Positions 6,503 to 41,956 of a stretch of DNA of 64,000 nucleotides are shown here, piece after piece. Each line of letters opens with the position of its first letter. Position 1 is the first letter of the stretch. Location: sequence record PV764602.1; one strand, given 5' to 3'. Both the position numbers and the translations under genes were made by a program. Below the pieces are notes generated by a model. That model saw only the letters and a list, made by a program, of their open reading frames with translations, was not told the DNA's origin and did not search any database.

Positions 6503-8788
6503 ATGATTACCCATCAGGATACACTGTTCTCCAACATCCTATACGGAAATAATTGGAGTGCAGCTACCTACCAAGCCGCAAATCGGTTCACCATCCAAGG
6601 TGACAAGCGAACTTCGTATGAGGTAGGTACCCAGGTTCAGATTCTCACGTCTGCTGTAGCTACTATGCAGTACAGCTACGTTAGTGCAGTTACGTTCGCC
6701 TCCAACGTTACTACGGTGACGGTGAGCGACGGTCTATTCGCTTCGGGTCAGAAGATCAACGTTCGTGCATCGCCGTTTGGTGCCAACAACATGCCCCTCG
6801 GCCGACGCTTCAAAGAAATCAGCGTGTTCGGTGCGAACGGCCTGACGATCTCGAATGCGAGTCCGAAGTTCACCCTGTTCGTTGAAGGCGTTGGTGCGGG
6901 CAAGGTCAACACGTTCACTTTCCAGCCGGGCTCGGATGGTATCTCGTTCAAGGTTGGCCGTGATGCAATCGGTCTCGATGCCATGCGCATTGACGCCACT
7001 TCGACTGCCATCACCAAGGTGACGTTGTTCTCGCCCCTGACCTTTGGCGCGACGTATACGGGCGCCCTGACTTCGCTGACCGACCTTCTGACGATTGGTC
7101 AATACGCACTGACCTATTCGGCTACGGGTTCTTCGACCGGCAGCAATCGTCTGTATATCTCCGGCCCTAATGGCGGCGAGTTCACCGTTGGTCCTACCAA
7201 CGATGCTCAGGTATTCCGTCGTATTCGACTGCGTGCTACTGACGTTGTGGTCGAGAACAATCCCGGCGGTTCCTCGCAAGCAGGCTCGATCTGGCATAGC
7301 CTCAACTTCGATCCTGACACCCGTGTTACCAAGGGTCAGAATGGTTCTTGGATGGATTCGGCTTACACTGCGATCAACAACCTTAACAACGCTCAGGGGT
7401 ATTTCAACCAGTGGGCATCGGGCGCCGCACAGGCTCCTGTTGCAGGTTCGACGGGTGTTGTGCAAACCATGCACAGTGCGGGTGGCAACAACTTTAACCC
7501 TGTGGCTGGTGCTTCGCTGGTGCAGACGGCTTATGTCACCAATGGCACCGCACCTGCCCTGTATGTGCGACGCAACGTAGGTGCTTCGGGTTGGTCTGCA
7601 TGGACTAAGCTGTATACCCAAGCAGATTTCTCGCTTGGCGATTACGTCAAGATCGCAGGCGGTGATACCATCCAGTCCCCGATCACTGTACGTACTGCCT
7701 TGTCCGTTGGCACGACTGCGGATGCAACGTCCACCCTGAACTTCGGTACCTCGGCCAGTCCCAACGGTCCTGCTGCTACCATTTCTGTTACGGGCGGCGC
7801 AGCGACCACGGGTCGTGGTGCAATGACTATCAACGCGCAGTCCATCGCGCTGCCTGCACTGAACGTCAACGGTACGATGAACGTTTCGGGCGCTGCTTCG
7901 ATGGCGGGCCCACTGACCATCACTACTGGCTCCATACTGCTGGGTAACGGCACGTATGGGGAATCGCGTATTAGCAATACCTTCGACGACTGGTATTTGT
8001 ATTCCAGTCCTACGGGACTTGGCTGGTACAGTATCAGTAAGGGTAGTGCTTTCTCACTGGACAAGAACAGCAAGGCGTTCACGTTCAATGGTGCGGGTAC
8101 CATCAACGGTCAGACTACCATCAATGGTGGTCTGAACGTGGCGAGTGGTAGCGGTATCATCACTTCGGGCAACGTTGTTGGTGCCAACGGCAACTTCTCC
8201 AATGACGTGTTTGCTCCGGGCGCTTTCCGTGGTGCTCGCCTGCACATTTACGCAGGCTGCATTGCCTACGGTCAGGGCTTCCTGCCTAGCTGGAACGACT
8301 ACGGTGATGGCGCAACGGTCCTGACTAACGCACGCGGCGGTGGTACGGGCGGTTTCAAGTTCCGTCAGATGAATAGTGACGGTGGTGGTCAGGTTTTCCT
8401 TGCCTTCATCAACCCGAACGGTACCATCGGTTCGGCGTCGGACGAACGCATGAAGGAATTCGGTAAGGTACTCGACCTGTCTGACGCTCTTCGGTTCATC
8501 CGTGAGCAGCGAGTCAAGCATATCAAGTGGAAGCACACCGGCGAGGAGGATATTGCGTTTGGTGCGCAGAGCATCTTCAAGACCACTAGGTTCCTGGCCC
8601 ACTATGACAAGGGTGCTGACTTCTGGCAGCTGTACTACCCGAAGGTCGCTCTGTATCATCACGAAGCTCTCTTCCATATCCTTGAAGTGCAGAACAATCA
8701 CGAAGCCGACATTCAGATCCTGATTCGCAAGAACGAAAATCTGGAAGAGGAAGTGAAGCAGCTGCGCGAACGGTTGGATTCTCTCTAA
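6503..8788 (+). CDS. tail fibre with C-terminal intramolecular chaperone (peptidase S74)
   Basis: Gly/Thr-rich shaft; SGWSAW repeat; GSASDERMKE autocleavage motif followed by a C-terminal coiled coil. Confidence 0.85.
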   Translation: MITHQDTLFSNILYGNNWSAATYQAANRFTIQGDKRTSYEVGTQVQILTSAVATMQYSYVSAVTFASNVTTVTVSDGLFASGQKINVRASPFGANNMPLGRRFKEISVFGANGLTISNASPKFTLFVEGVGAGKVNTFTFQPGSDGISFKVGRDAIGLDAMRIDATSTAITKVTLFSPLTFGATYTGALTSLTDLLTIGQYALTYSATGSSTGSNRLYISGPNGGEFTVGPTNDAQVFRRIRLRATDVVVENNPGGSSQAGSIWHSLNFDPDTRVTKGQNGSWMDSAYTAINNLNNAQGYFNQWASGAAQAPVAGSTGVVQTMHSAGGNNFNPVAGASLVQTAYVTNGTAPALYVRRNVGASGWSAWTKLYTQADFSLGDYVKIAGGDTIQSPITVRTALSVGTTADATSTLNFGTSASPNGPAATISVTGGAATTGRGAMTINAQSIALPALNVNGTMNVSGAASMAGPLTITTGSILLGNGTYGESRISNTFDDWYLYSSPTGLGWYSISKGSAFSLDKNSKAFTFNGAGTINGQTTINGGLNVASGSGIITSGNVVGANGNFSNDVFAPGAFRGARLHIYAGCIAYGQGFLPSWNDYGDGATVLTNARGGGTGGFKFRQMNSDGGGQVFLAFINPNGTIGSASDERMKEFGKVLDLSDALRFIREQRVKHIKWKHTGEEDIAFGAQSIFKTTRFLAHYDKGADFWQLYYPKVALYHHEALFHILEVQNNHEADIQILIRKNENLEEEVKQLRERLDSL

Positions 8789-8821
8789 GGACATTGGGCA
8801 CAGGGACGTGCTCCCTTTTTA
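8786..8821 (+). promoter_or_regulatory. paired CsrA/RsmA-like sites (TAAGGACA + GCAC-AGGGAC-GTGC hairpin) followed by U-tract
   Basis: ACAGGGACGT matches (A/U)CANGGANG(U/A); the first site overlaps the fibre stop codon. Confidence 0.65.
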
Positions 8822-8831
8822 GGTAGAGGCT

Positions 8832-10223
8832 ATGTGGATCACCCCTCAGAATCAAACTCTTGATGACACGTTCGATCCATACTTTCCGGGTACAACTCGG
8901 TGGTATGGTTACACCGGCATCCTCATCAACAATACGCAAGACACCTACGATCGGTACGCTCCTTTGCAGTATGGCAGGCAAGCTCCATCCACGGCGATCC
9001 TTGCGCAGAATCAGGTAGACCTGAATCAGATTTACGCAGCCCGAGGTACAGCCGGCTACCTGCAAGGTATCTCTATCCCAAATTGCTACGTGGGCTGCTC
9101 TGGCGTTACCATCAACGATCTTCTCGCTGCTCGATGCACCATCATCATCAAGAACGACGGTACGTGGCAGCAGTGGTTCTATTCCACCAACTACAAGACG
9201 GATAGCCCGGGTGCATATGCACCTCCTAATCGTGGCATCCCTCGAACCGAAACCAACTTCAGCAACGGACGCATGAACGCCGCCGGTAACTGGGCACAGA
9301 TTCCGTTCGCTGGTGTGGGTAACAACTACGAGACTTTCTGCCACGCTCCTTGGGCTCCATACGAAAGCAAGAACCCACCTGATCTAGATTGGGGTACTGC
9401 CGATCACTATAATCGGTATGATGCTGCACTCATCAACTATATCTGGCACAACTTTAAGGGCCAAGGACAGTTCGGTAGTGCTAGTGATCCATACGTGGTG
9501 CAGAACACTACACAGAACCCTAATGAAGACATTCCAGATGGTCGGGTATATCGCATCGACCGCGATATTCGGTTCACCCTTGGCTTGACTGCACAGGGAC
9601 GCAACAACGTTCGTTGGAACTACGATGACAACGGTGCTCTGTCATGGTACAACCGAGCCAACTTTTCGGTGTACATTCAGACACCCGGCGGCGGTCAGCG
9701 TGTAGGTGCCACCTGCCTTATGACCAATGAGATTCGTTGGAATGCGTGGAATTGGACGGGTGGTAGTGTCGGCGGCGGTGGTGGCGGTGGTGGCGGTGGT
9801 TGCGTTGCTGCTACCAGCTATGTTGACTTCCAAAAGACCGCAGGCACTGTTGAGGCAGGCGACTACCTCATGGGTATGACGGATGATCTGCAATTTATGG
9901 AGCTACACGTCCTGAGTGTGCGTCGTCAAGTGCAACCGTGTGTCCGACTCTACTCAAAGAGTGGCGTCACCCTTGTGTGCTCAAAGTCCACGCCGCTGAC
10001 CCTACAGAACGGAGATTGCGTGCTGGCAGGCGAAGCACGAGCAGGTATCAAGCTTCCGGTACGATTCTTCGCGGCTGATCCTGAGTGGGAAACCATCGTC
10101 AAGATCGAGGAGGTTGGCAACCGGGAAGTGATGCTCATCAACTGCGGTGGACAGAGCTATGCTGCCGGTGAGTTGCCGGGCCGCTATATCTACACCCACA
10201 ACAACAACCAGCAGAAGATGTGA
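8832..10223 (+). CDS. putative tail-tip adhesin with poly-Gly linker and C-terminal Hint domain
   Basis: Three N-terminal repeats ending DLNQIYAARGTA; G10 at 9771-9800, then CVAATSYV (block A, Cys at 9801) and IYTHN (block G, 10197-10202). Confidence 0.75.
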   Translation: MWITPQNQTLDDTFDPYFPGTTRWYGYTGILINNTQDTYDRYAPLQYGRQAPSTAILAQNQVDLNQIYAARGTAGYLQGISIPNCYVGCSGVTINDLLAARCTIIIKNDGTWQQWFYSTNYKTDSPGAYAPPNRGIPRTETNFSNGRMNAAGNWAQIPFAGVGNNYETFCHAPWAPYESKNPPDLDWGTADHYNRYDAALINYIWHNFKGQGQFGSASDPYVVQNTTQNPNEDIPDGRVYRIDRDIRFTLGLTAQGRNNVRWNYDDNGALSWYNRANFSVYIQTPGGGQRVGATCLMTNEIRWNAWNWTGGSVGGGGGGGGGGCVAATSYVDFQKTAGTVEAGDYLMGMTDDLQFMELHVLSVRRQVQPCVRLYSKSGVTLVCSKSTPLTLQNGDCVLAGEARAGIKLPVRFFAADPEWETIVKIEEVGNREVMLINCGGQSYAAGELPGRYIYTHNNNQQKM

Positions 10224-10642
10224 TGATTGGTTCTGACCAACTCTCAGAAGTAGGTGTACCTGTCGGAGAGCTCTCCATTGGGAGGACTCTCGACGTATAT
10301 GCGGTGGACGATCTACACTCGGTCATCCGCCTGAAAGGAACCGTCTCAAATCGGGTCCTGCGCAGTGCAGAAGTAGTAACCATCACAACTGCCTCCGGCG
10401 CTTCCGTTGTGGTGGCTGCCCAAAGTCGCCTCCCTGTCTATAGCGGACAGACAGCGCTGGCTAAGAATGTTGGTGCCAACATGATTGCTGTGATGGCCCC
10501 TAATGGCGCTTTTCGGTGGGAGCGGGTTGCCACCATCGAGGCTGGTACTGAGGCCGTAGTGGACCTCAAGTGTGAAGGCTACATAGTAGCCGGTAACGAT
10601 CCTAAAACCGGGCTAATCTTGGTGTCTGGATCGCTGCCGTGA
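10220..10642 (+). CDS. stand-alone degenerate Hint-like protein
   Basis: Aligns by eye with the upstream Hint domain (V.ITT.SG..V..S...LP; WE.V..IE.G...V.DL.C.G...AG) but lacks the catalytic Cys and HN. Confidence 0.6.
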   Translation: MMIGSDQLSEVGVPVGELSIGRTLDVYAVDDLHSVIRLKGTVSNRVLRSAEVVTITTASGASVVVAAQSRLPVYSGQTALAKNVGANMIAVMAPNGAFRWERVATIEAGTEAVVDLKCEGYIVAGNDPKTGLILVSGSLP

Positions 10643-10656
10643 CAGTCAATTTTACG

Positions 10657-10685
10657 TAAGGACATAAGGCTACGGATAGCAGCCT
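10657..10685 (+). promoter_or_regulatory. paired CsrA-like sites TAAGGACA and GCT-ACGGAT-AGC hairpin
   Basis: Two ANGGAY cores 14 nt apart in the leader of the 10722 gene. Confidence 0.5.
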
Positions 10686-10721
10686 CACATAAAGACACTT
10701 CCCAACAAATAAGGAACGATC

Positions 10722-11399
10722 ATGCAACTCCAGGTTCTTCTCTCCTCTGTCGAAGCTCTCAAGTACGTTGCCGGCCTGCGGCTGCCTGCTGTCAAGGCGT
10801 TCAAGGTCAGTTCATACCTGCAACGTGCTCAGGTCCATATTGACGCATGGCAGGCAACTGGCCGGACTCTGGCCCAGCGCCACTACGGCGAAGACCAGCA
10901 GCCGCTGTCTCCCGAAGACGCCGTACAGTTCAAGGCAGCCACTGACGAAGTGCTTGCTTCGGACGTCGAAGTCGATACTGTCAAGCTCCTGAGCTACCCG
11001 GCAGACTTCAAGGAGGAAAGTTTCATCCCCCTGAACATGGCCATCCTGTCTGAGCACTTTGTTGACGTTACCAAGCCCGAAGCTACTGGTGTCACTAAGA
11101 TTAGTCGGGGTAAGCTGATTGGTGCCTACATGTCCCTGCAACAGCTGGGTCAGCAGGAACTGCCGAAGGCCGTTGGCGAAAATTTGCTGTTCAACCTGAT
11201 GACGGTCCGAGACCTACTGAATTCGTTCTCGGAACGCGACGGTGAACTGACTAAGCAGGGCGATGCGAAGGCTCTGGAGGAATATCGTTCCGAGGAAGTG
11301 GAGGTCAACTTCTATCCCATCAACATCAATGCGTTTGGTGATGTTGAAGTGGCTCCGGCACTTCTCGTAGATGCCGCGTGGCTCATCACTGAGGAATGA
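10722..11399 (+). CDS. hypothetical protein with two tandem copies of a DUF1617-like domain
   Basis: Halves share L...LP.....L...L.......EVEV pattern; AAGGA RBS. Confidence 0.6.
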   Translation: MQLQVLLSSVEALKYVAGLRLPAVKAFKVSSYLQRAQVHIDAWQATGRTLAQRHYGEDQQPLSPEDAVQFKAATDEVLASDVEVDTVKLLSYPADFKEESFIPLNMAILSEHFVDVTKPEATGVTKISRGKLIGAYMSLQQLGQQELPKAVGENLLFNLMTVRDLLNSFSERDGELTKQGDAKALEEYRSEEVEVNFYPININAFGDVEVAPALLVDAAWLITEE

Positions 11400-11402
11400 T
11401 TC

Positions 11403-11948: not shown

Positions 11949-11958
11949 AGAGGATGGC

Positions 11959-12684: not shown

Positions 12685-12690
12685 CTAACG

Positions 12691-12720
12691 TGCTGGGAAC
12701 ATTAGTTCCCAGCATTCTTC
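12691..12720 (+). terminator. Rho-independent terminator
   Basis: TGCTGGGAAC-ATTA-GTTCCCAGCA followed by TTCTTC. Confidence 0.7.
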
Positions 12721-12736
12721 GTATAGGCCCCTGACT

Positions 12737-13102: not shown

Positions 13103-13122
13103 CACTTCAATGAGGTAACGTC

Positions 13123-13464: not shown

Positions 13465-13691
13465 TGAAAACTCTCCTGATTATCGCCATCGCCTTACTTG
13501 CAGGCTGCGCAACTACTCCACAAGTGGTGGCTCAAACCGACATTTGCGCTGGCTGGAAGGCCATCAAGGTCAACGAAAACGACGAATTCACGGATGGAAC
13601 TGCCAAGCAGATTCTAGCGCACAATTGTCAAGGCGCAGCCTTGAAGTGCTGGGCCTATCCGAGGAATGATCCCCAAATTTGTGAACGCTAA
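13464..13691 (+). CDS. outer-membrane spanin lipoprotein (Rz1-like)
   Basis: Lipobox LLAGC; additional Cys residues; TAATG overlap with the i-spanin. Confidence 0.8.
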   Translation: MKTLLIIAIALLAGCATTPQVVAQTDICAGWKAIKVNENDEFTDGTAKQILAHNCQGAALKCWAYPRNDPQICER

Positions 13692-13700
13692 GAGGTAACA

Positions 13701-16085
13701 ATGCCGCTGCCCACTTCCATCCAACCCATCATTGAGAATACTCCGGACATTCTCAAAGCATGTGTTGAAGTCTATCAGTCCATGTCTCTGCTACAGGACC
13801 GGGGCTTCATGTTCTTGAACGAGCAGATTGAATTGCTCACGTCTACGGGTCAGGTGGCACACGTCACCACTGCGTATGGTACTCAGGTTGAGTTGCCCAC
13901 GTATCATACTCTGGCAGCCACCTCGAACGCCTCTACGGAATTGGTGCAGCAGTTTCAGCGCCAAATCTACGACGTGTTCACTAGCAACAACCCGACGGTA
14001 ATCATTAGTGACGGTCTTGGTAACGACACTCAGGTGATCGGCTATCAGACCATGAACGACAAGGTTAACGCTACGTCGGACGTGGCTTCTATCGCCAACA
14101 CCAACGCGCTCAACGCGCTGGGTAAGGCCACCGAAGCGCTGAACCGTGTTACCAACTCCGAGCTCAACGCCAACGTGGCTTTGGCGAACGGCACACCACC
14201 CACCTATCAGACGCGTTCGGTTCTCGATACTGTTACGACGATGCAACGCAATAGTATCGCCTACGTGATCGCTGATCCGGTTCCCACCAACAACACCATC
14301 TACCAGTACAACGGTACTGCATGGACTCCTCAGTATGATCGGCTGCTGACCGCCCTAGGTAGTCCGCGTGGCTATCTGGCCCCACTCACGGGCGCTATCT
14401 ACCGTACCTATCAGAGCAAGCTAGAATCACTGGTTACTCCTGAAGACGTGGGGGCCAAGGGTGACGGCACTACTGATGACGGTCCCGCCTTCATCGCCGC
14501 CGCTGCGAACGGGCGCCTGATTGTGCTGTCCCCCAACAAGACCTACCGTATCACCTCCAACGCCACTGTAGGCAGCATCATGCCTAATGGCTCCAAGATT
14601 TCCATCGGTCCGGGCGCTACCCTGACTTTTGATGGCCTGATCGTGGACGATGCTACGGTTGTGTTTACGGGTGAGGGCAACGCCGTCAGCAGCACTAGCG
14701 TCTACAGCGTTGGCTGGTTCGCAGGTGATAGCTTTAACGCCAAGTGGCTCGCCATGAAGCGTGGTTTCACCCAGCAGGTAGTCAAGTACGTCACGCTGCC
14801 GATGCCGCACCGCACCGATCCTGCGGCAACTACCGCAGCTTCGGACGGTCAGGCACGTTGGAAGCTTACGGACTCTGTGGTCTTCAACAATACGGAATCT
14901 AACCTGATCGTCAATGCGCTGGGCGAATTCCTTGTGGACCAGTCCGCCTCGCTGTCGGCAGGTGCTTTCATCCTTGGCGAGCTGACTGCCCCCTCCAGCA
15001 TCAACTTCCCGAACGGCTTGCGCGTCCTGTGTAACGGTAGTGCAACTTATGGTCTGCGCGTTCGCGGCGGTAGCAGCATCAGTTTTGAAGAACTACTGGT
15101 TCTGGACAGTGCAACCAACTCCGGCATCCTGTGGGACAACTATAACGGCCCGAGTCATCGCATTAGCTTCGACCGCGTGCGTATCGACGGCTTTGGTGTG
15201 GCAGGCGTAACTATCCAGCCGCAGGGTGGCCCGAGCTATCCGAACCAATCGCCTCCGATCACTTCGTGTTCGATCAATTCGCTGCAAACGCGAGGCGGTC
15301 GTAGCGGCTGCACGAACTTCGTCAAGATCGCGGGTAACGTGGATGGCCTGACCATCACCAACGTCCTTGAAGATCGTCCGTCGGGTAGCCTGCTGTTCGA
15401 CTGGAGCGATTCCATGTTCTCGCTGACTAACACTCAGTACGGCACGATTGGTCGCTCCGGTTTGGAGATTGGTCACATTCAGGCGACCAGCACCCAGCTG
15501 CCCATCATCCGTGCGTTCGACAGCACTTCCGCTGCTGACCCTGCGAATGGCAAGATCACGTTCTCGGTAGAGCACATCTATCAGGCGTATCAGCAGAACA
15601 TCGTTCCGGTCATCATGGAATACTCGAAGAACTGCACCATCGGACGTATCAACGCAGGACGCCCCACCTCTAGTCAGGAAGTGCTTGTCCGTATCTTCCG
15701 CGACTGCGAGGGTATTTCTCTGACCGGTACACACTACACCGCTGTTCGTAGTCAGGCCCTGCGTACTCAGTTTGACGGACGCTTCGGCATGGTGGACGTG
15801 GTGCAGCAGAACTCTGCGATCTTCACGGATCTAAACACTGCGGCACTGACGTTCAAGTTTGACCTAATCTGCCTCACCTCCGCGTCTACTTACGCTTCGG
15901 GTTGGGCAGGCGCCAACGCTCTCGATATTCCCACGTCGCTGACCAAGAATATCAACGTTGCCCAGGGTCCGCTGGAAGGAACGACCGGCCCTGAAAGCAC
16001 CCTCAGCATCAGTGCTGCGGAAAACAAGTTCTTTGTGGAAAACCGAACCGGACAGAATCAGCTCGTTGCGGTTCTCATGTCCTAA
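13701..16085 (+). CDS. tailspike / polysaccharide depolymerase (beta-helix)
   Basis: VTPEDVGAKGDGTTDDGPAFIAA pectate-lyase-3-type start, then beta-helix-like repeats. Confidence 0.8.
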   Translation: MPLPTSIQPIIENTPDILKACVEVYQSMSLLQDRGFMFLNEQIELLTSTGQVAHVTTAYGTQVELPTYHTLAATSNASTELVQQFQRQIYDVFTSNNPTVIISDGLGNDTQVIGYQTMNDKVNATSDVASIANTNALNALGKATEALNRVTNSELNANVALANGTPPTYQTRSVLDTVTTMQRNSIAYVIADPVPTNNTIYQYNGTAWTPQYDRLLTALGSPRGYLAPLTGAIYRTYQSKLESLVTPEDVGAKGDGTTDDGPAFIAAAANGRLIVLSPNKTYRITSNATVGSIMPNGSKISIGPGATLTFDGLIVDDATVVFTGEGNAVSSTSVYSVGWFAGDSFNAKWLAMKRGFTQQVVKYVTLPMPHRTDPAATTAASDGQARWKLTDSVVFNNTESNLIVNALGEFLVDQSASLSAGAFILGELTAPSSINFPNGLRVLCNGSATYGLRVRGGSSISFEELLVLDSATNSGILWDNYNGPSHRISFDRVRIDGFGVAGVTIQPQGGPSYPNQSPPITSCSINSLQTRGGRSGCTNFVKIAGNVDGLTITNVLEDRPSGSLLFDWSDSMFSLTNTQYGTIGRSGLEIGHIQATSTQLPIIRAFDSTSAADPANGKITFSVEHIYQAYQQNIVPVIMEYSKNCTIGRINAGRPTSSQEVLVRIFRDCEGISLTGTHYTAVRSQALRTQFDGRFGMVDVVQQNSAIFTDLNTAALTFKFDLICLTSASTYASGWAGANALDIPTSLTKNINVAQGPLEGTTGPESTLSISAAENKFFVENRTGQNQLVAVLMS

Positions 16086-16091: not shown

Positions 16092-16116
16092 GGTCACATG
16101 GACGTGACCCTTTCTT
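16092..16116 (+). promoter_or_regulatory. CsrA/RsmA-like hairpin GGTCAC-ATGGAC-GTGACC
   Basis: ACATGGACGT is a perfect Rsm consensus in a 6-bp stem, just upstream of the lipoprotein RBS. Confidence 0.65.
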
Positions 16117-16924: not shown

Positions 16925-16960
16925 AAGGGCCACCCCTTTCGGAGCGGCCCTTATGTTGTT
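16925..16960 (+). terminator. Rho-independent terminator
   Basis: AAGGGCC...GGCCCTT followed by ATGTTGTT; A-tract upstream suggests it is bidirectional. Confidence 0.65.
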
Positions 16961-17026
16961 GGGTTGGACTGCAAGGATGCTAGTGTCCAGGAGTTAAGGG
17001 GAGCACGATGCTCCCCTTCTTTTTTA
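16951..17026 (+). ncRNA. candidate GGA-rich Csr/Rsm-type small RNA
   Basis: Non-coding gap with four GGA motifs, including GC-AAGGAT-GC, ending in a hairpin plus U-tract. Confidence 0.35.
16996..17025 (+). terminator. Rho-independent terminator (also ends the minus-strand island)
   Basis: AAGGGGAGCA-CGA-TGCTCCCCTT followed by CTTTTTT. Confidence 0.75.
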
Positions 17027-29906: not shown

Positions 29907-29965
29907 TCCTACTTGGAAGGTAGGAGTAGCAACAACATGGATGTTCCACCTACTACTAATGGAGA
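29907..29965 (+). promoter_or_regulatory. GGA-rich structured leader with CsrA-like hairpins
   Basis: TCCTAC-TTGGAAG-GTAGGA, AAC-ATGGAT-GTT and a GGAG RBS. Confidence 0.55.
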
Positions 29966-30249: not shown

Positions 30250-31047
30250 ATGTATGTGTTTACCAACACCTCAGCTAATCAGATGACGTTCGGCGACCTG
30301 ACGCTGGCCCCGAACGCCACCACTGAATTCCCTGACGATCGGGTGGCTGCTCTGAGCACCCACAACCTGAAAGCGCTCAACGATTTTGCCAACGGCAATC
30401 CGCTGATCCTGAAGGTCGAGTATCAGGCTTCGGTTCCGCCGGTCACCATCGGTCCTGTATCCGCCGCTCCTGCCATTTCTACTCCGTTCGGTAACAAACT
30501 GATGCAGGCTGCTGATGCAGATGCTGCTAAGGAACTGCTCGGGGAAGGTCAAGGTAGTGGCTATACGTTGCCTGTCGCTACGGGCTCGGTCCTTGGTGGC
30601 GTCAAGATCGGTGCGGGCCTTAGTGCTACCGCCGATGGCACCCTGAGTCGCAGCGCCCTTGTTGCCGGAGACATTCCAGATTTGGACGCCGCCAAGATCG
30701 CCTCCGGCACTCTGGCGGTTGCGCGTTTGGGTACTGGCACTCCAAGTGCTGCTAACGTGCTTTTGGGTTCGGGCGCTTTTGGCGTACCTCCGACTGCTAC
30801 TAAGGCAACCGCTCTGGCTACGGGCCGTACCTTCACTCTGAGTGGCGGGGCTTCCGGTACCACCGCCTCTCCGTTCGATGGCTCTGCTAACGCCACCCTC
30901 AACGTTACGCTGGCTACTCCGACAAGTGCTCTCCGTGGCGGTGTCCTCCAGCAGGCCGCCATTGCTGACTTGACCGCCGCTCCTACCCAGCAGGATTTCA
31001 ACGCCCTGCTGGCAGCCCTGCGTGCAGCCTCGGTAATCGCTTCCTGA
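30250..31047 (+). CDS. head fibre / decoration protein
   Basis: YTLPVATGSVLGGVKIG repeat; C-terminal QAAIADL...DFNALLAALRAA head-fibre motif. Confidence 0.7.
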   Translation: MYVFTNTSANQMTFGDLTLAPNATTEFPDDRVAALSTHNLKALNDFANGNPLILKVEYQASVPPVTIGPVSAAPAISTPFGNKLMQAADADAAKELLGEGQGSGYTLPVATGSVLGGVKIGAGLSATADGTLSRSALVAGDIPDLDAAKIASGTLAVARLGTGTPSAANVLLGSGAFGVPPTATKATALATGRTFTLSGGASGTTASPFDGSANATLNVTLATPTSALRGGVLQQAAIADLTAAPTQQDFNALLAALRAASVIAS

Positions 31048-31055: not shown

Positions 31056-31071
31056 GGGCCAAGGACGGCCC
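31056..31071 (+). promoter_or_regulatory. CsrA-like hairpin GGGCC-AAGGAC-GGCCC
   Basis: Its 14-nt core GGCCAAGGACGGCC is identical to the one at 41943. Confidence 0.6.
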
Positions 31072-31178
31072 ACTAGTCGGGTAAACCTTTCAAATTAGCC
31101 GGGTAAGGGTGCCTCAAATACGGTACTTGGCAGCTAATTTTACTGTGAAGGCGAGGGCTATTCCTCCGTGCTTTTCAG

Positions 31179-32525
31179 GTGCAGGGATTCACCACTTCCT
31201 ATGGCCTCAACTCAATGTCAGCCTTTCCTAATGTAATCAATGACGCTGTTGTCGGACAACAAGTCGTAGCCAACGCGAGCTTCTTCATTGCTCCTAACAC
31301 GGATACGACCGGATTGATTGCCCGGTACAGTATCGTAGACGCAGACGATGCGGAGTGGACTTCCGGCATCGCCACAAACATTGTGGTGTCGCCTCTAGGT
31401 TCGCGCTCCAAGGTGAATGCCTCGGCTTCGGTCGATATTCCCTACACGCTACCTGTCGAGTTCTACGGTACCAAGTATCAACTGGCGTGGACCCTTGAAA
31501 CTCAAGATGGTACATTCGTTTCCAGTTATATCGAGTCGTTCAACGTCAAGCCTGTCATGCAGGGTGGCGTGTTCGGCGTACCGGACATCGTAGAAGCAGC
31601 AACAGACAAAACGATTCTCAAAGCGGTACTGCCTTCCAACGATCAAGTGGAAGTGCTGGTGTTCAAGGGCAACGCCTGCCTTAACAACGGCAGCCCTGTC
31701 ATCCTGCAACCGGGTGACAAGGTATTCAACGGTACGCAGTATCTGGGTAGTTTCAACCATGCTACCCTGCGTAACCCCGGAGCGTCCCCTCCCCCGAATT
31801 CTGCGTTGGGGATCAACCAGCCGTCCCCTGCTCTCATACAAGCGATGGCAGCAGCGCGCGGCTTGAACCCCGCCGACATTACAGCCAGCAATGAATCGCT
31901 GACTCCTTCACTTGAGCCCTATAACTTGTGGTGGCAATACAAGGATGAGGATTCGGGTGAGGTAGTTGTCGAGGATAGCTATCTGTATCATGTGACTCCA
32001 ATGATCCTACAGGCAGGACGGGAGCTACAACAGTTTGTGAACCGCGCTAACAACGAAGGCCGGTTGCAGGAACTGACCATCGACCTGAACGTAATCATTC
32101 ACTTCCTGAAGCAAGGCGGCGACTACTTCAACAGTGTCGGTATGCCAACCTTCTTTGACTTCACCTGTGCTAATGGACCCTTCCGTCAATTCTGGGTCAT
32201 GTGCAGTGCAGTGCGTCTCCTCCGTAGTCAGTACCTTCTGGAGGCCGAACGTAGTATGGTGATGCAGGGCCAGAGCGTTACACTGGACATTGACATTACT
32301 GCGTACTACGAAACTGCGGCATCGGATGCCCAAGCATTCGTTGACCAATACTTGCCGGAGTTCAAGCAGAATATCACACGCAAGGGTCTGCTGACCGGCG
32401 ACGGTGACTACGGCAACGGCGGCATCATTTCGAGGAACGTGGGTGCTATGGGCATTCAGTTGTCCGCGACCACCAACCTGTTCTTCGGTTGGCGTAATCA
32501 GTACGCACGCCGTGGCCTGTTCTAA
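31179..32525 (+). CDS. virion structural protein (neck / head-tail-like)
   Basis: 448 aa; start uncertain (GTG 31179 or ATG 31215); genomic context only. Confidence 0.6.
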   Translation: MQGFTTSYGLNSMSAFPNVINDAVVGQQVVANASFFIAPNTDTTGLIARYSIVDADDAEWTSGIATNIVVSPLGSRSKVNASASVDIPYTLPVEFYGTKYQLAWTLETQDGTFVSSYIESFNVKPVMQGGVFGVPDIVEAATDKTILKAVLPSNDQVEVLVFKGNACLNNGSPVILQPGDKVFNGTQYLGSFNHATLRNPGASPPPNSALGINQPSPALIQAMAAARGLNPADITASNESLTPSLEPYNLWWQYKDEDSGEVVVEDSYLYHVTPMILQAGRELQQFVNRANNEGRLQELTIDLNVIIHFLKQGGDYFNSVGMPTFFDFTCANGPFRQFWVMCSAVRLLRSQYLLEAERSMVMQGQSVTLDIDITAYYETAASDAQAFVDQYLPEFKQNITRKGLLTGDGDYGNGGIISRNVGAMGIQLSATTNLFFGWRNQYARRGLF

Positions 32526-34964: not shown

Positions 34965-34976
34965 TAGGAGTAACGC

Positions 34977-35330: not shown

Positions 35331-35342
35331 GAGTACCCCATA

Positions 35343-37820
35343 ATGAGCGTCCTGTTTTCTAACAACGCATTGACGGTGTTGGCAGCAGCGGTCGGTCAGA
35401 ACGAGGTTACCTCGACTATCACTGTAGCAACTGGTGCGGGGCAGCGTTTCGCTGCCCCCACCAACGGTGACTATCAGGTCATTACGCTCTCCGATCCCCT
35501 GTATACCCGATTTGAAATCTGCCATCTAACTGCGCGCACGGGCGATACCCTCACTGTGTTGCGAGGGCAGGAAGGTACTACCAAGCAAGCGTGGGACGTT
35601 GGCGACCGCATTTATGCGTCCTTCACTGCTTCCACGGTCGGTCTCTTCCTGCGCGCTGACACTCCTGCGTCAATTAGCGGGCTGTGGGACTTCAGTACGC
35701 CGCCGCTAATCAATGGTAACAACATTTGGCATTCCGGCAACGTCACGCCTGCTGATCGTACCAAGGCGCAGACTATCTCCGGGCTCTGGACGTTCACGAC
35801 GCTGCCCAAGTTCAACGCATTTAATTTCGTGACGACTCAGGGCGCAACTATGGTTGGGCCCTTTTTGCTTTATGGGTCCCCGACTCAGGACAATGAGGCT
35901 GCCACCAAGCTGTATGTGGACAACCTCGCCGCCGGTCTGCACGATAAGGAAGCAGTGGTCGCAGCCAGTACCGATGCCGGTGGTAATGTCAATATCACCA
36001 GCGCCCCGAGTACGCTGGACGGTGTGACTCTTGTGGCAGGAAATCGCATTCTGCTCAAGAATCAGACGAACAAGACCCAGAATTTGATCTACGTGTTCAA
36101 CGCAGTTGGCCAGCCCCTTACCGCTGCTTCGGACAGTGATGAGACGGGTGATCTAAAGGCAGGTAGTACCGTATTCGTCACAGGCGGTACCGTCAACAAG
36201 AACTCACGTTGGACCGTCATCACCACTGACCCGATCACCATTGGCACCACTCCCATCGAGTGGACTCAGACGTCGGGTGCTGGTCAGATTCGTTCTGGCC
36301 CCGGCATCAAGATCATTGGTGACCAAATCAGCGCAGACGTTCCCGCTGCTGGCGGCCTGACGGTATCAGTTGCAGATGGCATTGGCTTGTCTGTGATGCA
36401 AGACCTAGTGGTCAACACCGGAGCTGCTGCCGCTGGAACCACGGGTGCCTCCTTGCGCTACAACAGCATCACGGTGGACAAGTTTGGTCGGGTAGTTAAC
36501 GCTACCAACCTACCTTATGCTCTGACCACTGGCGCAGTGTTTACGGGAGCCCTCACTCGCACTTCGACTCCTTCTTCCGGCAACGACATTACCACCGTAG
36601 ACTTTGTGCAGAATGCCATTGTCTCTATCAGCACCATGCGTCAGCCGGTTGCTGCGGTGGCTACGTCCAACGTTTCCCTAAGTGGCCTAGGCTTTATTGA
36701 CGGGTATCAGGTCAAACTCGGCGAGCGTGTTCTCGTTGCAGGACAGACTACGCAGACTGCCAACGGTGTTTATGTCACCACGGCTAACGCGTGGGTGCGT
36801 GCTTCGGACTTTAACAGCACTTCGTCCCTCGCCGCTGGCGTCATGTTCCCGGTTCAGAACGGTACCACGTTCAAGAATCAGATATTCATGCTGTCCACTC
36901 AGGGCACCATCAGTATCGGTACTACCCCTATCACCTTCCAGCGTGTGACGGGTACGGGGCTGATTAACAAGGCGTCAGGTGGCGGCATTGATATTGTCAA
37001 TGACTCCATCGGTCTCGAAACGCAATCGGGACTGACCGCAGGCACCTACAACACTGCTCGCGTCACTGTGAACAGTAAGGGCATTATCACTGGCATCGAG
37101 GCAGGCTCCTCGGGCGTGACCTCGTTTAATGGCCGTAGTGGCGTTGTGATGCCCGCTACGAACGATTACACCTTCGCTATGTTGGGTGGCAAGCCCACCA
37201 CCCTCGCAGGCTACGGCATTACCGACCCGGTCATGCTCCGCACTGGCGGCACGATCACTGGTGTTGTGTCCATTGACTACGGCAATCCAGCTGCAACGGA
37301 CGGTCCGTACCCACTGCTGTTCATGCGTCTTACCGAAGGTGAGCGCAATACCAACAAGGTTGGTATGAACATCATCAAGGAGGATCGCAATTCTTGGGCC
37401 ATCGCTGCTGTAGCTGGTTCGGATGTAGTCAACATCACTAACGGCAGCAAGTTGAATCTGCGGTTCCAAACCGCAATGGTTAACGACGCTGAGATTCTCA
37501 CTGACGCCAACTTTGATGCGTGGACTGCCGTTGCGTTCTCTACGGGTAACACCACTCGTAACGCGGTCGCGCGTGGGTGCTACATGGTAGACACTACCTC
37601 CCTTGCTGGTACGCTGGTACTGCCCTCCAATCCTGCTCCGGGCACAGCTGTTCGTGTTCTCGATGCTGGTGGTACGTTCGGTACCAAGAACCTGACTATC
37701 TCGCGCAACAACGCTAGGATCGTAGGCGCGCTGGAAGACTTGGTTTTGGACAAGAATAACGGTGGCGTCACGCTGGTTTACTACAACGCTGCACGTGGTT
37801 GGGTCCCGTTCTTTAGTTGA
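35343..37820 (+). CDS. proximal long tail fibre
   Basis: FSNNALTVL...GTT..AW N-terminus; two ATKLYVD / V..G.RILLKNQT....N..Y repeats; gp34-like C-terminal DTT...LP..P..G..V...D..G.F module. Confidence 0.85.
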   Translation: MSVLFSNNALTVLAAAVGQNEVTSTITVATGAGQRFAAPTNGDYQVITLSDPLYTRFEICHLTARTGDTLTVLRGQEGTTKQAWDVGDRIYASFTASTVGLFLRADTPASISGLWDFSTPPLINGNNIWHSGNVTPADRTKAQTISGLWTFTTLPKFNAFNFVTTQGATMVGPFLLYGSPTQDNEAATKLYVDNLAAGLHDKEAVVAASTDAGGNVNITSAPSTLDGVTLVAGNRILLKNQTNKTQNLIYVFNAVGQPLTAASDSDETGDLKAGSTVFVTGGTVNKNSRWTVITTDPITIGTTPIEWTQTSGAGQIRSGPGIKIIGDQISADVPAAGGLTVSVADGIGLSVMQDLVVNTGAAAAGTTGASLRYNSITVDKFGRVVNATNLPYALTTGAVFTGALTRTSTPSSGNDITTVDFVQNAIVSISTMRQPVAAVATSNVSLSGLGFIDGYQVKLGERVLVAGQTTQTANGVYVTTANAWVRASDFNSTSSLAAGVMFPVQNGTTFKNQIFMLSTQGTISIGTTPITFQRVTGTGLINKASGGGIDIVNDSIGLETQSGLTAGTYNTARVTVNSKGIITGIEAGSSGVTSFNGRSGVVMPATNDYTFAMLGGKPTTLAGYGITDPVMLRTGGTITGVVSIDYGNPAATDGPYPLLFMRLTEGERNTNKVGMNIIKEDRNSWAIAAVAGSDVVNITNGSKLNLRFQTAMVNDAEILTDANFDAWTAVAFSTGNTTRNAVARGCYMVDTTSLAGTLVLPSNPAPGTAVRVLDAGGTFGTKNLTISRNNARIVGALEDLVLDKNNGGVTLVYYNAARGWVPFFS

Positions 37821-37825
37821 TTCAC

Positions 37826-37857
37826 AGGCAGGTCCACCACGGGCCTGCCTTTCCTTT
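37826..37857 (+). terminator. terminator-like hairpin
   Basis: AGGCAGGTCC-ACCAC-GGGCCTGCCT followed by TTCCTTT. Confidence 0.55.
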
Positions 37858-37870
37858 GGTGGACTATCCA

Positions 37871-39808
37871 ATGACGATTCTTCAAACGCTGTACCCAATC
37901 CCGGATAACGTCCCACGAACTGATGCTTCGTTCAACACCTTCACTGGGGTCAACCGATTCACTAGGGTGGTGGCAGGTAATTCAACCCCGAACGAAGCAT
38001 ACGATCTATGTGCTGGGACTACAAAGATCGGAAGCACCCTAACCGTTATTGGCGATACTACGCTCAACATTGCCAAAGCTGCGTTACTGACAATTACGGG
38101 TAGTAACGCCATGATCTTCCAAGGCTTTGGAAGCTCTCAGGGCCGTATCACCCTGTTCGGTTGGCTAGGTGTCGATTCCGGCGATACTCTGGCCATCATC
38201 GACCGCGTAGGTATGTCCAACTATCGCTGGGCGCTCAGTGCAAGTCAGATGACGCTCAACGATAATGCTGTGTGGCATGCAGGCAACTTCAATCCCGATC
38301 TGTACCTCAAGGTCGCTGACGCGTCTTCTACTTACGTCAAGCTTGCCAACAGTAACAACAACATCACGGGCACGGTGTGGGGACTTCGCTCGGTCACTGC
38401 ATCGGGCTCCGACACCTTGTCCATACAGATTCAGTCGGGCGGTGCCTATCAGTACGGACGTGGCGCTGTATTGGAATTGAATGGCAAGAACGCAACTGGC
38501 AGCAACGCTGGCGGCTTCCGTCTGCTCAGTGACGGTCCCTCGGCGATCAATTCGTACTCCGGCACTCTATCCCTAGCTGCCTCGGGCGGTGGTCAGATTA
38601 CGTTCAACAGCTCCGGCCTGTCTCTGCAAGGGGCCACGAGTGTTGCAGGTGCAACCACATTTGCCTCTACGGTAGCAGTTACTGGCCTCATCACTGCCAC
38701 TGGCCAACTAAAGGTTGGGCCTGCTTCCGGCGAAGCGCGTATCAACTTTGGTCTGGACACGGGCTACATCTACAGTAGTGCCACCTCAATTGGCTACTAT
38801 TGGCCCGGTAGTAGCGCTGTCAACTTGTGGCGTCTTATTAAACCGGGCCAAAGCGAAGGTGTTTACCCTGCCTTGTCTATGATCGTGTCGGGAGGGGGTT
38901 ATTTCGACGGTATTGTTCGGGCTACCTCTAGTCTCATCAGCATCCACCCGGACGCCCTGCGTATGCGGCAATCCGCCCGCACCGTTATTCACCGCTTTGA
39001 CGGCAACGCTTATTACTGGCTTCGTACTGCGGCTGACGACCCCGATGGTGTCTGGGATTCCGCACGTCCTATGACCTATAATGTTGGTGGGGACCAGTTG
39101 ACGTTCAACCCTGCTGGTGGCGTAACCATGCAGACCCAGCTGACACTTTCCTTTAATGCGCCATTCCGACTCACGGGCTTTGGTGCAGCAGGCGCTATAT
39201 ACATTCACGGTACCAATGGTGCAGGCGATGACGTTTGCAGCATCTTACGCAACAATGCCAACTCTAACTACACGCTGACGTGGAACGGTGGTGTCACGAT
39301 CACTGGTGCTCAGACAGTAGCAGGCGAAGCTTACTGCAACAATTGGTTCCGCAGCAATAGCTCCGGCACTGGCTGGTATCATCAGGTACATGGCGGTGGT
39401 TGGTACATGTCGGATAACGATTACGTGCGTTCGTACAATCAGAAGGCAGTGGCTGGCTCTGATTTCGTGATTTGGTCTGATCGCCGTTCCAAGACCGAAG
39501 ACCGTGACTTGAACATTACTGACGTTCTTCCCAAATTCATGGGACTTGCCCCAAAGTGGTATGTCAAGAATGGCACGAAGGCCGAGTACGGCATGTTCGC
39601 ACAGGACGTGCGCGCACTGTTCCCCGATATGGTCAGCCTGACCAACAACGAAGGATATGACGATTACCACTTCCTCTGGATTAACATGCTTCATGCTCCC
39701 CACATTCTTGTGACCCAGGATAACGTGCGCCGCATCGAAGAACTGGAGGGTATCGTGGCCTCGCAGCAGCATCAGATCGCGCAGCTGCAATCTAGGCTTG
39801 AGGTGTAA
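37871..39808 (+). CDS. distal tail fibre A with S74 chaperone
   Basis: Starts MTILQTLYPIPDNVPR; NNWFRS...GWY...GGGWYM.D repeat; WSDRRSK motif followed by a coiled coil. Confidence 0.85.
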   Translation: MTILQTLYPIPDNVPRTDASFNTFTGVNRFTRVVAGNSTPNEAYDLCAGTTKIGSTLTVIGDTTLNIAKAALLTITGSNAMIFQGFGSSQGRITLFGWLGVDSGDTLAIIDRVGMSNYRWALSASQMTLNDNAVWHAGNFNPDLYLKVADASSTYVKLANSNNNITGTVWGLRSVTASGSDTLSIQIQSGGAYQYGRGAVLELNGKNATGSNAGGFRLLSDGPSAINSYSGTLSLAASGGGQITFNSSGLSLQGATSVAGATTFASTVAVTGLITATGQLKVGPASGEARINFGLDTGYIYSSATSIGYYWPGSSAVNLWRLIKPGQSEGVYPALSMIVSGGGYFDGIVRATSSLISIHPDALRMRQSARTVIHRFDGNAYYWLRTAADDPDGVWDSARPMTYNVGGDQLTFNPAGGVTMQTQLTLSFNAPFRLTGFGAAGAIYIHGTNGAGDDVCSILRNNANSNYTLTWNGGVTITGAQTVAGEAYCNNWFRSNSSGTGWYHQVHGGGWYMSDNDYVRSYNQKAVAGSDFVIWSDRRSKTEDRDLNITDVLPKFMGLAPKWYVKNGTKAEYGMFAQDVRALFPDMVSLTNNEGYDDYHFLWINMLHAPHILVTQDNVRRIEELEGIVASQQHQIAQLQSRLEV

Positions 39809-39809
39809 C

Positions 39810-41936
39810 ATGACGATTCTCCAGACTCTGTATCCCATCCCCGATAATGTTCCACGTCTGGACGCAACTGGCGTGCAGACTTTTGCCAACACGGTTCGTT
39901 TCGGTCGAGTGCTAGCAGGAACTAGCGTGGCGGAAGAATCGGGCTTCGGCCTAATCACCACCAACGCCAAGGTCACAGGCTATCTTAACGTAGCCTTAGC
40001 CGCCACACTGACCAGCACGTCTAACGTGTTCGGTGGCTTCTCGGTCGCAGGTAACGCAATCTTTGGTGGCAGCAGCTTGCAGATCGTTGGTGATGGCAAC
40101 ATTTATCTGACCTTCCGCACTACCTCGAACCAAACGGACACTCAGTTAATTACGGACCGGGGTGCTAAGGGTTTCATCATCCGTAATTGGGTGACTCTTG
40201 GTACTGGTTCGTACACCGACTTCTCATTGAATGCGGCAACGGGTGCTCTCAAGTGGGGCGCGCAGGATATTTACCACTCGGGTACCTTTAACTGGAAAAC
40301 CTTCGCGGTCAAAGATGATCGAAACCGCTTCTCCATTCTAGACCTAGCCTCTTACGTTAGTTGGGGTACTCTCCGATTCCTTGACCCTGCTGACCTGTCA
40401 GCCACTGGCCTTCGCTATTACGTAACTACCGATACTACCTCGTGGGCTTTGAACACTGCGAATGATGATGGGAACTGGCGACGCACTCGTTTTCGCGTTC
40501 CCCGAGATAGTGCCTCACCTGTGCAAATCGACGGCGGAGCTGCTTGGTTCGTTGGAAATCTTCCGTCCCCTGCTGATACGACCAAGGCTGCCATCATTGA
40601 AAGCAGCAGCTTCGCTTGGGAATTCCGCGCTGCTCCTGTACCCCAGGAAGTTAACAGTTGGCAGTGGGGCCCCTTCGTACTGCGAGGTTATGACTCCGCG
40701 GGCAATAACGTGCGTTCGTTTGCACGACGGGCGGAGGCGGGTACGGATGCGTCTTCCATCGCTACGGGTCTTCGGAGTCAGCTAGGTGGTGTCAATCGTG
40801 CATGGATTGAGTGGTATCTCAATTCCTTCCGTATCTGTGGTGCTGATGGTACGATTTCGGCTTCTTTTAGCGACTCTGCCATCTGGCTACAGAAGCCGCT
40901 TACTTTCAGTTCTACTGCGCTGTTCAACGGCGTGGCCACCTTCTCCTCCGTCATAAGTTCACGCACCGGCACTCCTAATACTCAAATGATTTTCCACTCG
41001 ATCGGGTGGAATAATGGTGTGCAGCGTTGGGCGCAGGTGATGGAAGCGACGGGTGCTTATGTGTGGTACTGCTACAATGCCACTGGCGGTAATCCTACTT
41101 CTGTGTTGTCGATGACTAACCCCGCCAACGGGCTCGGGGGCAATAACCCCGGCATCGGCGTGGCAGGTTCGATCTATGTAACCCAAGGCATCATTGCGCC
41201 TAACTGGGGCTTCACTACCAACGATGCCAACAAGGCGTCGTTCATCGCTACCGGTAGTTACGGTGGTGGTTTCATGTGTCAAGATAACGCAGGTGCTGGT
41301 ATCTACTACGGAGGTATGTATGCTGCAAGCGGCTGGGTCGGTATTGGCCTAACCGCTGCCAACTCGGTTGGCCTTAACAAGATTCTACGACTTACGCAAG
41401 AACAGTACATGACGGTACAGACTGAAGGTGGCTTCGCCGCCCGAGGTGGCTCCGCTGTCATGGTTGTAGAGGAGCGCAGTAGCACCAACGTGCAGTTCCA
41501 TATGTACGCTACAGGTGGTGCGTGGCGTGTTTGGGATAACGTTACCGGTGCCGACAACCTCACTTGTTATCGGACTACCGGTGACTTGTATATTCGTAGT
41601 TGGGGTTACGCGGCCAACTTTGCTATCAACTCGGATCGTCGAATCAAGACGTGGATTTCTGATTTGGACCCCGAGGAAGAACTGGACAAGGTGGTGACGC
41701 TGGTTCCACGCCTGTACCTCAAGGACAACAAGCTGGAATCTGGCGTGTACGCGCAGGACGTGCAGGAACGGTGGGCCCACATGGTTACCGTGAGCGAGTC
41801 AAATCCCTATGGCATTGACGGACTCCTGACTGTGGCCCACACCATGCTACACGCTCCACTGGTTGCGTCCATCCAAGCCTTGCACGCTCGCATCGAAAAG
41901 CTGCAAGCCCGACTGCAAGAGCTTGAACCCCGATAA
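39810..41936 (+). CDS. distal tail fibre B with S74 chaperone
   Basis: Same N-terminal 16 aa as fibre A; NSDRRIK motif followed by a coiled coil. Confidence 0.85.
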   Translation: MTILQTLYPIPDNVPRLDATGVQTFANTVRFGRVLAGTSVAEESGFGLITTNAKVTGYLNVALAATLTSTSNVFGGFSVAGNAIFGGSSLQIVGDGNIYLTFRTTSNQTDTQLITDRGAKGFIIRNWVTLGTGSYTDFSLNAATGALKWGAQDIYHSGTFNWKTFAVKDDRNRFSILDLASYVSWGTLRFLDPADLSATGLRYYVTTDTTSWALNTANDDGNWRRTRFRVPRDSASPVQIDGGAAWFVGNLPSPADTTKAAIIESSSFAWEFRAAPVPQEVNSWQWGPFVLRGYDSAGNNVRSFARRAEAGTDASSIATGLRSQLGGVNRAWIEWYLNSFRICGADGTISASFSDSAIWLQKPLTFSSTALFNGVATFSSVISSRTGTPNTQMIFHSIGWNNGVQRWAQVMEATGAYVWYCYNATGGNPTSVLSMTNPANGLGGNNPGIGVAGSIYVTQGIIAPNWGFTTNDANKASFIATGSYGGGFMCQDNAGAGIYYGGMYAASGWVGIGLTAANSVGLNKILRLTQEQYMTVQTEGGFAARGGSAVMVVEERSSTNVQFHMYATGGAWRVWDNVTGADNLTCYRTTGDLYIRSWGYAANFAINSDRRIKTWISDLDPEEELDKVVTLVPRLYLKDNKLESGVYAQDVQERWAHMVTVSESNPYGIDGLLTVAHTMLHAPLVASIQALHARIEKLQARLQELEPR

Positions 41937-41956
41937 GGATACGGCCAAGGACGGCC
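41934..41956 (+). promoter_or_regulatory. paired CsrA-like sites TAAGGATA + GGCC-AAGGAC-GGCC
   Basis: The first site overlaps the fibre B stop; the second lies 12 nt downstream in a hairpin. Confidence 0.65.

Follow-up and report, generated by a model that had tools for sequence, protein, structure and literature searches.

Conserved hairpins with CsrA-type loops behind fibre and spike genes in the late operons of Xanthomonas phage PhiXhv-15

The last 64 kb of the genome of Xanthomonas phage PhiXhv-15 (PV764602.1, 228,725 bp) contain, in the spacers between late genes, a set of short hairpins that share a GGA-containing loop, and this raises the question of whether these hairpins are recognized by a protein of the CsrA/RsmA family or have some other origin. 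The stretch analyzed here, called the window, has 64,000 nucleotides and corresponds to positions 164726-228725 of the record, with which its sequence is identical; unless the record is named, coordinates are those of the window. PhiXhv-15 is a virulent jumbo myovirus whose host is X. hortorum pv. vitians (PMC13340338); its description mentions neither promoters, nor terminators, nor CsrA, and no account of the RNA biology of this phage was found in the literature searched.

An earlier note, made from the letters of the window, had quoted seven such hairpins and proposed that the late transcripts are wired into the Csr/Rsm system. The seven strings are all present where they had been placed, every one in a spacer annotated as non-coding in GenBank and on the + strand, the one that codes for the flanking genes; the spacer of the site at 16971 is convergent. 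The high-affinity target of CsrA and RsmE is an ANGGAX hexaloop that sits immediately on the closing C-G pair of its stem; N and X are looped out and variable, and pentaloops and longer loops are bound more weakly (PMC4005645). Compared letter by letter, the loops of the phage fit this consensus, as ANGGAX hexaloops on stems closed by C-G. Together with the strand bias of the hairpins, their conservation in relatives and the presence of a CsrA in the phage itself, this match leads us to lean, by a small measure, towards the reading that they are docking sites for a CsrA-family dimer on the late messages. To that extent the sequence gives the proposed wiring partial support; the site at 29934 found none, and the placement of the sites is not the classical one.

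Enrichment and conservation of the hairpin family

Hairpins were counted over the whole PV764602.1 genome with its annotation; a gene caller was applied outside the window only (within the window it recovered 56 of the 61 annotated stop codons), and some of the genome-wide "intergenic" pattern matches are annotated genes or gene-call errors. Intergenic sense DNA contains eight hairpins of the hexaloop pattern A.GGA[CT] with stems of 3 bp or more, a count never reached in 1000 dinucleotide-preserving shuffles (mean 0.78, maximum 4); with a stem of at least 4 bp, five were observed versus 0.28 in the shuffles. On the intergenic antisense strand there was none in two counts, and one (stem of at least 3 bp) when a slightly different set of segments was used. 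Expressed as density, hairpins with at least 4 bp reach 0.34 per kb in intergenic sense DNA, 0.023 in coding sense, 0.009 in coding antisense and 0 in intergenic antisense DNA; the ratio of intergenic to coding sense DNA is about 15 at this stem length and about 9 at stems of at least 3 bp. Five control hexaloop patterns gave 0-2 intergenic sense matches. The core C-A-N-GGA-N-G, some of whose 21 matches in intergenic sense DNA (1.44 per kb) are ordinary ribosome-binding sites or gene-call errors, is found three times in intergenic antisense DNA and at 0.55 and 0.35 per kb on the sense and antisense strands of coding DNA, and plain GGA is biased to the sense strand of the spacers only 1.4-fold. 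The hairpins are thus enriched over a shuffled background and biased to the sense strand.

A covariance model built from the hairpin family (R1) recovered nine members in the 228.7 kb, seven in the window and two outside it, one at record 67449, after the gene for the small subunit of ribonucleotide reductase, and the other at record 125990, on the minus strand, after csrA. Over the whole genome the model gave no further strong member; the one new match (16.3 bits) is in coding antisense DNA. The term network, which had been applied to these sites, is a generous word for only nine family members, two of which lie outside the late genes.

Relatives of the phage were obtained as metagenomic contigs, by way of a protein database followed by contig look-ups; scans of IMG/VR with single proteins yielded none. 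The connector protein (31179-32525) has metagenomic relatives at 86, 72, 68, 63, 62 and 57% identity, and the 794-aa spike-like protein at 74 and 39%. Six of the seven quoted sites, here named A to F, recur at the same gene junctions in these relatives (39-86% protein identity). Site A is represented in the relative L017 by AGGCGC-ACGGAC-GCGCCT, with compensatory changes; site B by GCT-ATGGAT-AGC in L016 and GGC-AGGAC-GCC in L017; and site C by GCCCAC-AAGGAC-GTGGGC in L016 and GGGGAC-ACGGAAC-GTCCCC in L017. At site D the core is kept in both, as CAAGGACG in L016 and as TGCC-ACGGAC-GGTG, with a 4-pair stem, in L017. Site E, before the connector gene, is kept in L007, L009, L010, L012 and L013 and is missing only in L014, the most distant, and site F corresponds to GGGCC-ACGGAT-GGCCC in L009 and GGGC-ACGGAC-GCCC in L010. 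Read from the strings, the orthologous stems have changed on both sides at at least nine positions and are broken at none, and the spacer sequence around them is not recognizably conserved. That the stems differ while the loop is kept, as had been remarked for the window, therefore holds both within the genome and between orthologous sites. Over the loci of the relatives, 11 hairpins were counted in 4.2 kb of intergenic sense DNA and 29 in 128.8 kb of coding sense DNA, and only two on the intergenic antisense strand.

In an alignment of 20 members, the loop letters A, G, G and A (columns A6, G8, G9 and A10) are invariant, the closing C-G pair is present in at least 90% (in 17 of the 19 distinct rows, the other two, from site B, having U-A), and X is C or T in 19 members and G once. 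Loop position N is free: the counts over the aligned hairpins are nine A, eight C, three T and one G. The stems belong to at least three unrelated sequence classes, and loop length departs from six at site C in L017 (7 nt) and at site B in L017 (5 nt). Paired cells amount to 84% versus 60% in shuffles and the covariation score is 0.61 versus 0.21, above all 500 shuffles and the slid controls, values that are inflated to some degree because the members were partly chosen for pairing. Related phages hence show the covariation that an RNA structure would leave, with compensatory changes in the stem and fixed letters in the loop.

As regards close kin, four further isolates are 99% identical to PhiXhv-15. 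Record OQ603359.1 is labelled "Erwinia phage Ep032", with Erwinia sp. YA1 as host; in a comparison over 10 kb it shares 99% identity with the Xanthomonas phages, and the host label deserves a check.

Architecture of the individual sites and their surroundings

Four of the seven hairpins are solid, those at 8796-8813, 16092-16109, 31056-31071 and 41943-41956; the seven sites and the motifs beside them all lie on the + strand. Site A (8796-8813, GGGCAC-AGGGAC-GTGCTC) extends the stem quoted from 8798 to six pairs and is present in both the minimum free energy (MFE) and the centroid folds. It starts 7 nt past the stop of a 761-aa gene (6503-8788), whose product has no assigned function and is located in the fibre cluster, and ends 18 nt before the start of a 463-aa gene. 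The sequence TAAGGACA at 8786-8793 includes the stop codon and a second GGA, 15 nt upstream of the GGA in the loop. Site C (16092-16109, GGTCAC-ATGGAC-GTGACC) also has six pairs, appears in the centroid fold and lies 6 nt past the stop of the 794-aa tail-spike-like gene (13701-16085).

Site E (31056-31071, GGGCC-AAGGAC-GGCCC; five pairs, in the MFE fold) lies 8 nt past the stop of a 265-aa head-fibre-like gene (30250-31047; PF11133), and an AATTTTA promoter-like motif (31136-31142) stands between it and the connector gene, with the same motif in L007. In the window and in L007 the distance from the hairpin to the connector start is 107 and 141 nt, respectively; the AATTTTA motif and some 100 nt have been added between hairpin and gene and not between stop codon and hairpin. 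Two gene starts deserve mention here: in L013 (10001-10040) the start called for the connector gene is some 40 nt too early, so that the gene takes in the conserved site E hairpin, and for PhiXhv-15 the database cluster of the connector protein has 436 aa versus 448 aa in GenBank (GTG start, 31179), so the true start may be 12 codons downstream (31179-31214). Site F (41943-41956, GGCC-AAGGAC-GGCC; four pairs, in the MFE fold) follows by 6 nt the stop of a 708-aa tail-fibre gene with an S74 chaperone domain (39810-41936); TAAGGATA at 41934-41941 again joins the stop codon to a second GGA, 12 nt upstream of the GGA in the loop, and an AATTTTA promoter-like motif (41959-41965) begins 2 nt after the hairpin.

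The remaining sites have shorter stems. Site B (10669-10680, GCT-ACGGAT-AGC) has only three pairs and occupies the leader of a 225-aa gene (10722-11399) whose Shine-Dalgarno sequence is AAGGAA; an alternative 5-pair stem presents the GGA in a 9-nt loop, and the GGA stays looped in the centroid fold. Upstream of it lie an AATTTTA promoter-like motif (10648-10654), found in the same place in L016, and a single-stranded GGA within TAAGGACA (10657-10664), 14 nt upstream of the loop GGA; at this last position L016 has TAAGGACA and L017 has TCAGGACA. Site D (16971-16980, GC-AAGGAT-GC) has only two pairs, is weak here, and is placed between two terminator hairpins of the convergent spacer. These terminators (16925-16952 and 16996-17018, strong) look crossed, the T-run of each being on the far side, and transcripts of both strands would therefore overlap across site D. 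The candidate at 29934-29945 (AAC-ATGGAT-GTT) has three AU-rich pairs and scores 14.6 bits with the covariance model; it is absent from the predicted fold and has no counterpart in L010. As a CsrA-type hairpin this site is not supported.

Over the 22 instances from the window, the rest of the genome and the relatives, the stem starts 6-21 nt past a stop codon in 15, and the genes upstream encode mostly large proteins of fibre type (fibre-cluster, tail-spike-like, head-fibre-like and tail-fibre). The distance from the hairpin to the next start is 15-42 nt in most instances. A second GGA is found 12-18 nt upstream in 10 of the 22, versus about 16% expected by a back-of-envelope estimate, frequently as TAAGGAYA with the stop codon included; this spacing suits a CsrA dimer, which has two RNA-binding faces. 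The Shine-Dalgarno sequence of the next gene contains a GGA at a minority of the sites: the three copies of site B, site C in L017, site F in L010 and the hairpin after csrA.

Among the neighbouring signals, the motif (C)TAATTTTA(G/C) occurs upstream of structural genes (window 10648, 19528, 31136 and 41959; record 2240) and at the same junctions in L007, L009, L010, L012, L013, L014 and L016, and is a candidate late promoter. The phage also encodes a sigma factor at record 13734-14750. In intergenic sense DNA, no word is more enriched than a different motif, (T)CCTGTAAATA, present in 14 spacers versus 0.6 expected; it is located at window 51636 and 56693 and upstream of csrA (L005 ~26513, minus strand), among others, and is a candidate promoter of a non-late gene class. 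A divergent spacer of 676 nt (L005:41052-41727, record 141052-141727), which parts the capsid genes from the early block on the minus strand, contains a repeat of about 24 nt in four copies and could be an origin or a regulatory hub. At the end of the window (63364-64000) one frame is open over all 212 codons and continues past the end of the record; PV764602.1 has no annotation there, and this is probably an unannotated gene or the start of one.

The phage-encoded CsrA and the competing explanations

A search of the genome for a csrA homologue, which the earlier note had suggested, was positive: a PF02599 member, annotated as "translational regulator CsrA", lies on the minus strand at record 126012-126248, a position outside the window and 38 kb upstream of it. 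The protein scores 66.9 bits against Pfam PF02599 (cut-off 27, E=1.5e-18) over profile positions 1-52 of 53, its residues 1-56 align with solved CsrA/RsmE chains (7yr6, 2bti, 1y00 and 2jpp; E ~1e-16), and the arginine of the V-x-R-x-E segment is retained. The leader of the gene has a TTTC-ACGGA-GAAA hairpin over the Shine-Dalgarno sequence and several further GGA motifs, with a GGA density that is not above background, and 15 nt past the csrA stop there is a hairpin of six pairs, AGGGCC-ACGGAG-GGCCCT. The spacer upstream of csrA (258 nt) begins with the CTGTAAATA motif, which is found in about 14 spacers, mostly of non-structural gene blocks; the structural genes have a different motif, AATTTTA(G/C). 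Elsewhere in the genome, the ribosome-binding site of the helicase gene (L005 ~41059, record ~141059, minus strand) is contained in the hairpin TTTTCT-AGGAC-AGAGAA, a pentaloop of CsrA type over the Shine-Dalgarno sequence.

Several observations weigh against the docking of CsrA on these hairpins. The sites are few, nine in 228.7 kb, the folding energies of the spacers (z-scores) are not unusual, and the alignment favours paired members, as said above. Overlap with a Shine-Dalgarno sequence, through which CsrA classically represses, is missing at most sites. A promoter-like motif stands between the hairpin and the next gene at site E, both in the window and in L007, at window site F and at record 67449, and transcripts started at these four motifs would lack the hairpin; given that the motif follows the hairpin at E, F and record 67449, the hairpin travels with the end of the upstream gene. 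With respect to the protein, none of the best 120 CsrA homologues is on the long contigs of the relatives, and the 243-kb JGI contig is not among the 74 metagenome matches of the homologue search, which suggests that csrA is absent from those contigs. Since, moreover, the nearest homologues (63%) are carried by Mu-like phages, the csrA of PhiXhv-15 looks like a recent capture, and the hairpins are probably older than the gene and would rely on the host protein. Finally, the csrA-bearing phages VvAW1 and PSTCR8lys and a Mu-like contig gave only coding-region matches with model R1; such hairpins did not show up in VvAW1 and PSTCR8lys, and there is thus no sign of a general pattern.

The explanation that competes best, though we hold it to be unlikely, is that these are generic hairpins of 3' ends (terminators, exonuclease barriers or processing stops) whose loop is constrained by a factor other than CsrA, for instance a phage RNA-binding protein or a nuclease. 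It accounts for the position of 15 of the 22 sites just past a stop codon and for the stem-loop-then-promoter layout of the four cases above, three sites of the window pass a simple terminator scan, and the hairpins are kept in relatives on whose contigs no csrA was found. Against it, five or more T in the 10 nt after the stem occur at only 6 of the 22 sites and orthologs disagree in this respect; consequently the hairpins are not primarily intrinsic (Rho-independent) terminators, an identity for which the stems are also short. The evident terminators of this genome have stems of 8-12 bp and varied loops, and plain structure needs no fixed loop, in contrast with the fixed A, GGA and closing C-G observed here while N varies; to our knowledge, no other protein of such specificity has been described. 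Scans of the window for terminator-like sites and for sigma-70 promoters gave no excess over shuffles. Two particular forms of RNA signal were also considered. Antitermination hairpins of the lambdoid boxB type were set aside on loop length and sequence alone. The site of T4 RegB is the tetranucleotide GGAG in an intergenic or Shine-Dalgarno context, and GGAG is found in one of 20 loops only, that of the hairpin after csrA, so cleavage sites of this type were rejected as well.

It is improbable that the loops are Shine-Dalgarno mimics, pairing with the tail of the 16S rRNA as standby or decoy sites for ribosomes between cistrons. GGA is indeed the core of many Shine-Dalgarno sequences of the phage (AAGGA, GAGG and GGAG are common) and most hairpins are placed 15-33 nt ahead of a start codon; however, with all four bases found at N, pairing is not kept up outside GGA, and this free variation argues against a mimic, which would constrain N. 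A purine at X would extend pairing of the Shine-Dalgarno type, and X is a pyrimidine in 19 of 20. Moreover, each downstream gene has a separate Shine-Dalgarno sequence of its own, no gene lies downstream of site D on the same strand, and in the window sites E and F are parted from the next gene by a promoter-like motif.

We give slightly less credit still to the idea of a DNA-level repeat, either a small palindromic element multiplied at the borders of gene modules through duplication or recombination, or the site of a DNA-binding protein. Three members (record 67449 and window 31056 and 41943) nearly share a sequence of 14-16 nt, and hairpin-plus-promoter modules recall the stem-loop/promoter modules of T4-type phages. 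Nevertheless, the strand bias (8 sense versus 0-1 antisense in the phage, 11 versus 2 in the relatives) is unexpected of a palindromic DNA site, the unrelated stem classes do not fit one repeat, and the orthologs keep pairing through two-sided changes with the loop fixed, the signature of RNA structure. Lastly, the choosing of chance hairpins from GGA-rich spacers, suggested by the 1.4-fold excess of GGA on the spacer sense strand over the antisense strand, which stems from ribosome-binding sites, and by the trivial stems at 16971 and 29934, is refuted for the family as a whole by the 1000 shuffles, none of which reached the observed count, and by the conservation of orthologous positions in five independent relatives, and is possible for 29934 alone.

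Under the reading we favour, docking of a CsrA-family dimer, a typical site is a stem of 4-6 bp, mostly G+C and closed by C-G, carrying the hexaloop A-N-G-G-A-Y, and in most cases it follows directly upon the stop codon of a fibre or spike gene, on the sense strand of a polycistronic late message. The loops would be bound by the phage CsrA, by host RsmA, or by both, and at about half of the sites one dimer may also grip the second GGA 12-18 nt upstream. The bound protein would act in cis on the message that bears the hairpin: a protein-capped 3' hairpin would stabilize the fibre or spike cistron in front of it and shield that cistron from the following one, a role that we prefer because the sites stay with the stop codons, and in short spacers, with 15-33 nt left to the next start, the entry of ribosomes into the cistron behind would be dampened too. 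Abundant late mRNA may also titrate CsrA, as a by-product secondary to this role, given that the sites are single, few and dispersed and that the phage adds a CsrA of its own.

Relation to known Csr systems

The phage hairpins share with stem-loop SL2 of RsmZ and with the RNA of the hcnA ribosome-binding site the loop length, the invariant A and GGA, the C-G closing pair and the variable N and X (PMC4005645). Pentaloop and heptaloop variants occur here too, at sites B and C of L017 and in the csrA leader. A difference is the penultimate pair, which in the phage sites is mostly C-G or A-U. In the known mRNA targets of CsrA, the GGA is usually located over the Shine-Dalgarno sequence or the start codon; in contrast, the phage hairpins lie 6-21 nt past the preceding stop, often with a promoter-like motif behind. 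The phage csrA leader, with a GGA hairpin over its Shine-Dalgarno sequence, resembles the leaders involved in CsrA autoregulation, and the extra hairpin just past the stop is a difference. A G+C hairpin after a gene end, in some cases with T-rich sequence and a promoter-like motif behind it, also recalls the intrinsic terminators and stem-loop-plus-promoter modules of large lytic phages; what sets the present hairpins apart is a short stem, a fixed loop sequence and the lack of a conserved U-tract.

Like the sponge RNAs CsrB, RsmY and RsmZ and the leaders that titrate CsrA, GGA stem-loops on abundant phage RNAs could soak up CsrA. Sponge RNAs have many sites in one small non-coding RNA, whereas the phage has single sites or pairs of sites scattered over mRNAs, and an identity as a Csr/Rsm sponge RNA was rejected on account of this dispersion; in a comparison with Rfam no sponge family was found in the window or near csrA, the sole match being a tRNA.

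CsrA homologues have been described on other mobile elements, such as RsmQ of plasmid pQBR103 (PMC9928087), the rsmM-type genes of Pseudomonas phages (PMC7366521) and the csrA of phage PTXU04 (PMC11879866), and PhiXhv-15 is likewise a mobile element with a CsrA of its own. The targets discussed for those proteins are host transcripts or host sponge RNAs, in contrast with the candidate cis sites that PhiXhv-15 has on its own structural operons. In the limited collection of literature searched, no report was found of conserved CsrA-type sites on the structural operons of the phage or element itself. The motif is known, and what appears to be new is its placement past stop codons in the late operons of a lytic jumbo phage, paired with a phage-borne csrA.

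A tentative, rather doubtful scenario would join these elements. In it, the fibre and spike cistrons of a lineage of jumbo phages would end in high-affinity CsrA hairpins that together form a cis-regulon of the phage's own, and one branch, formed by PhiXhv-15 and its close kin, would later have captured csrA, yielding a self-contained Csr circuit that sets the stability or stoichiometry of the receptor-binding proteins independently of the level of host RsmA.

Genes for CsrA have been reported in about 1% of phage genomes (PMC7366521), and knock-down of a phage csrA leads to smaller plaques (PMC11879866). Should CsrA not bind, the strictly conserved loop and the covarying stem would still be the mark of an undescribed RNA signal shared by a group of jumbo phages. 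If it does bind, the placement of CsrA sites just past the stop codons of polycistronic RNAs would add to the modes of Csr control known so far. The hairpins described here provide concrete, conserved candidate targets for a phage CsrA, its own late messages beside the fibre and spike genes, and with them the role of phage CsrA becomes directly testable.

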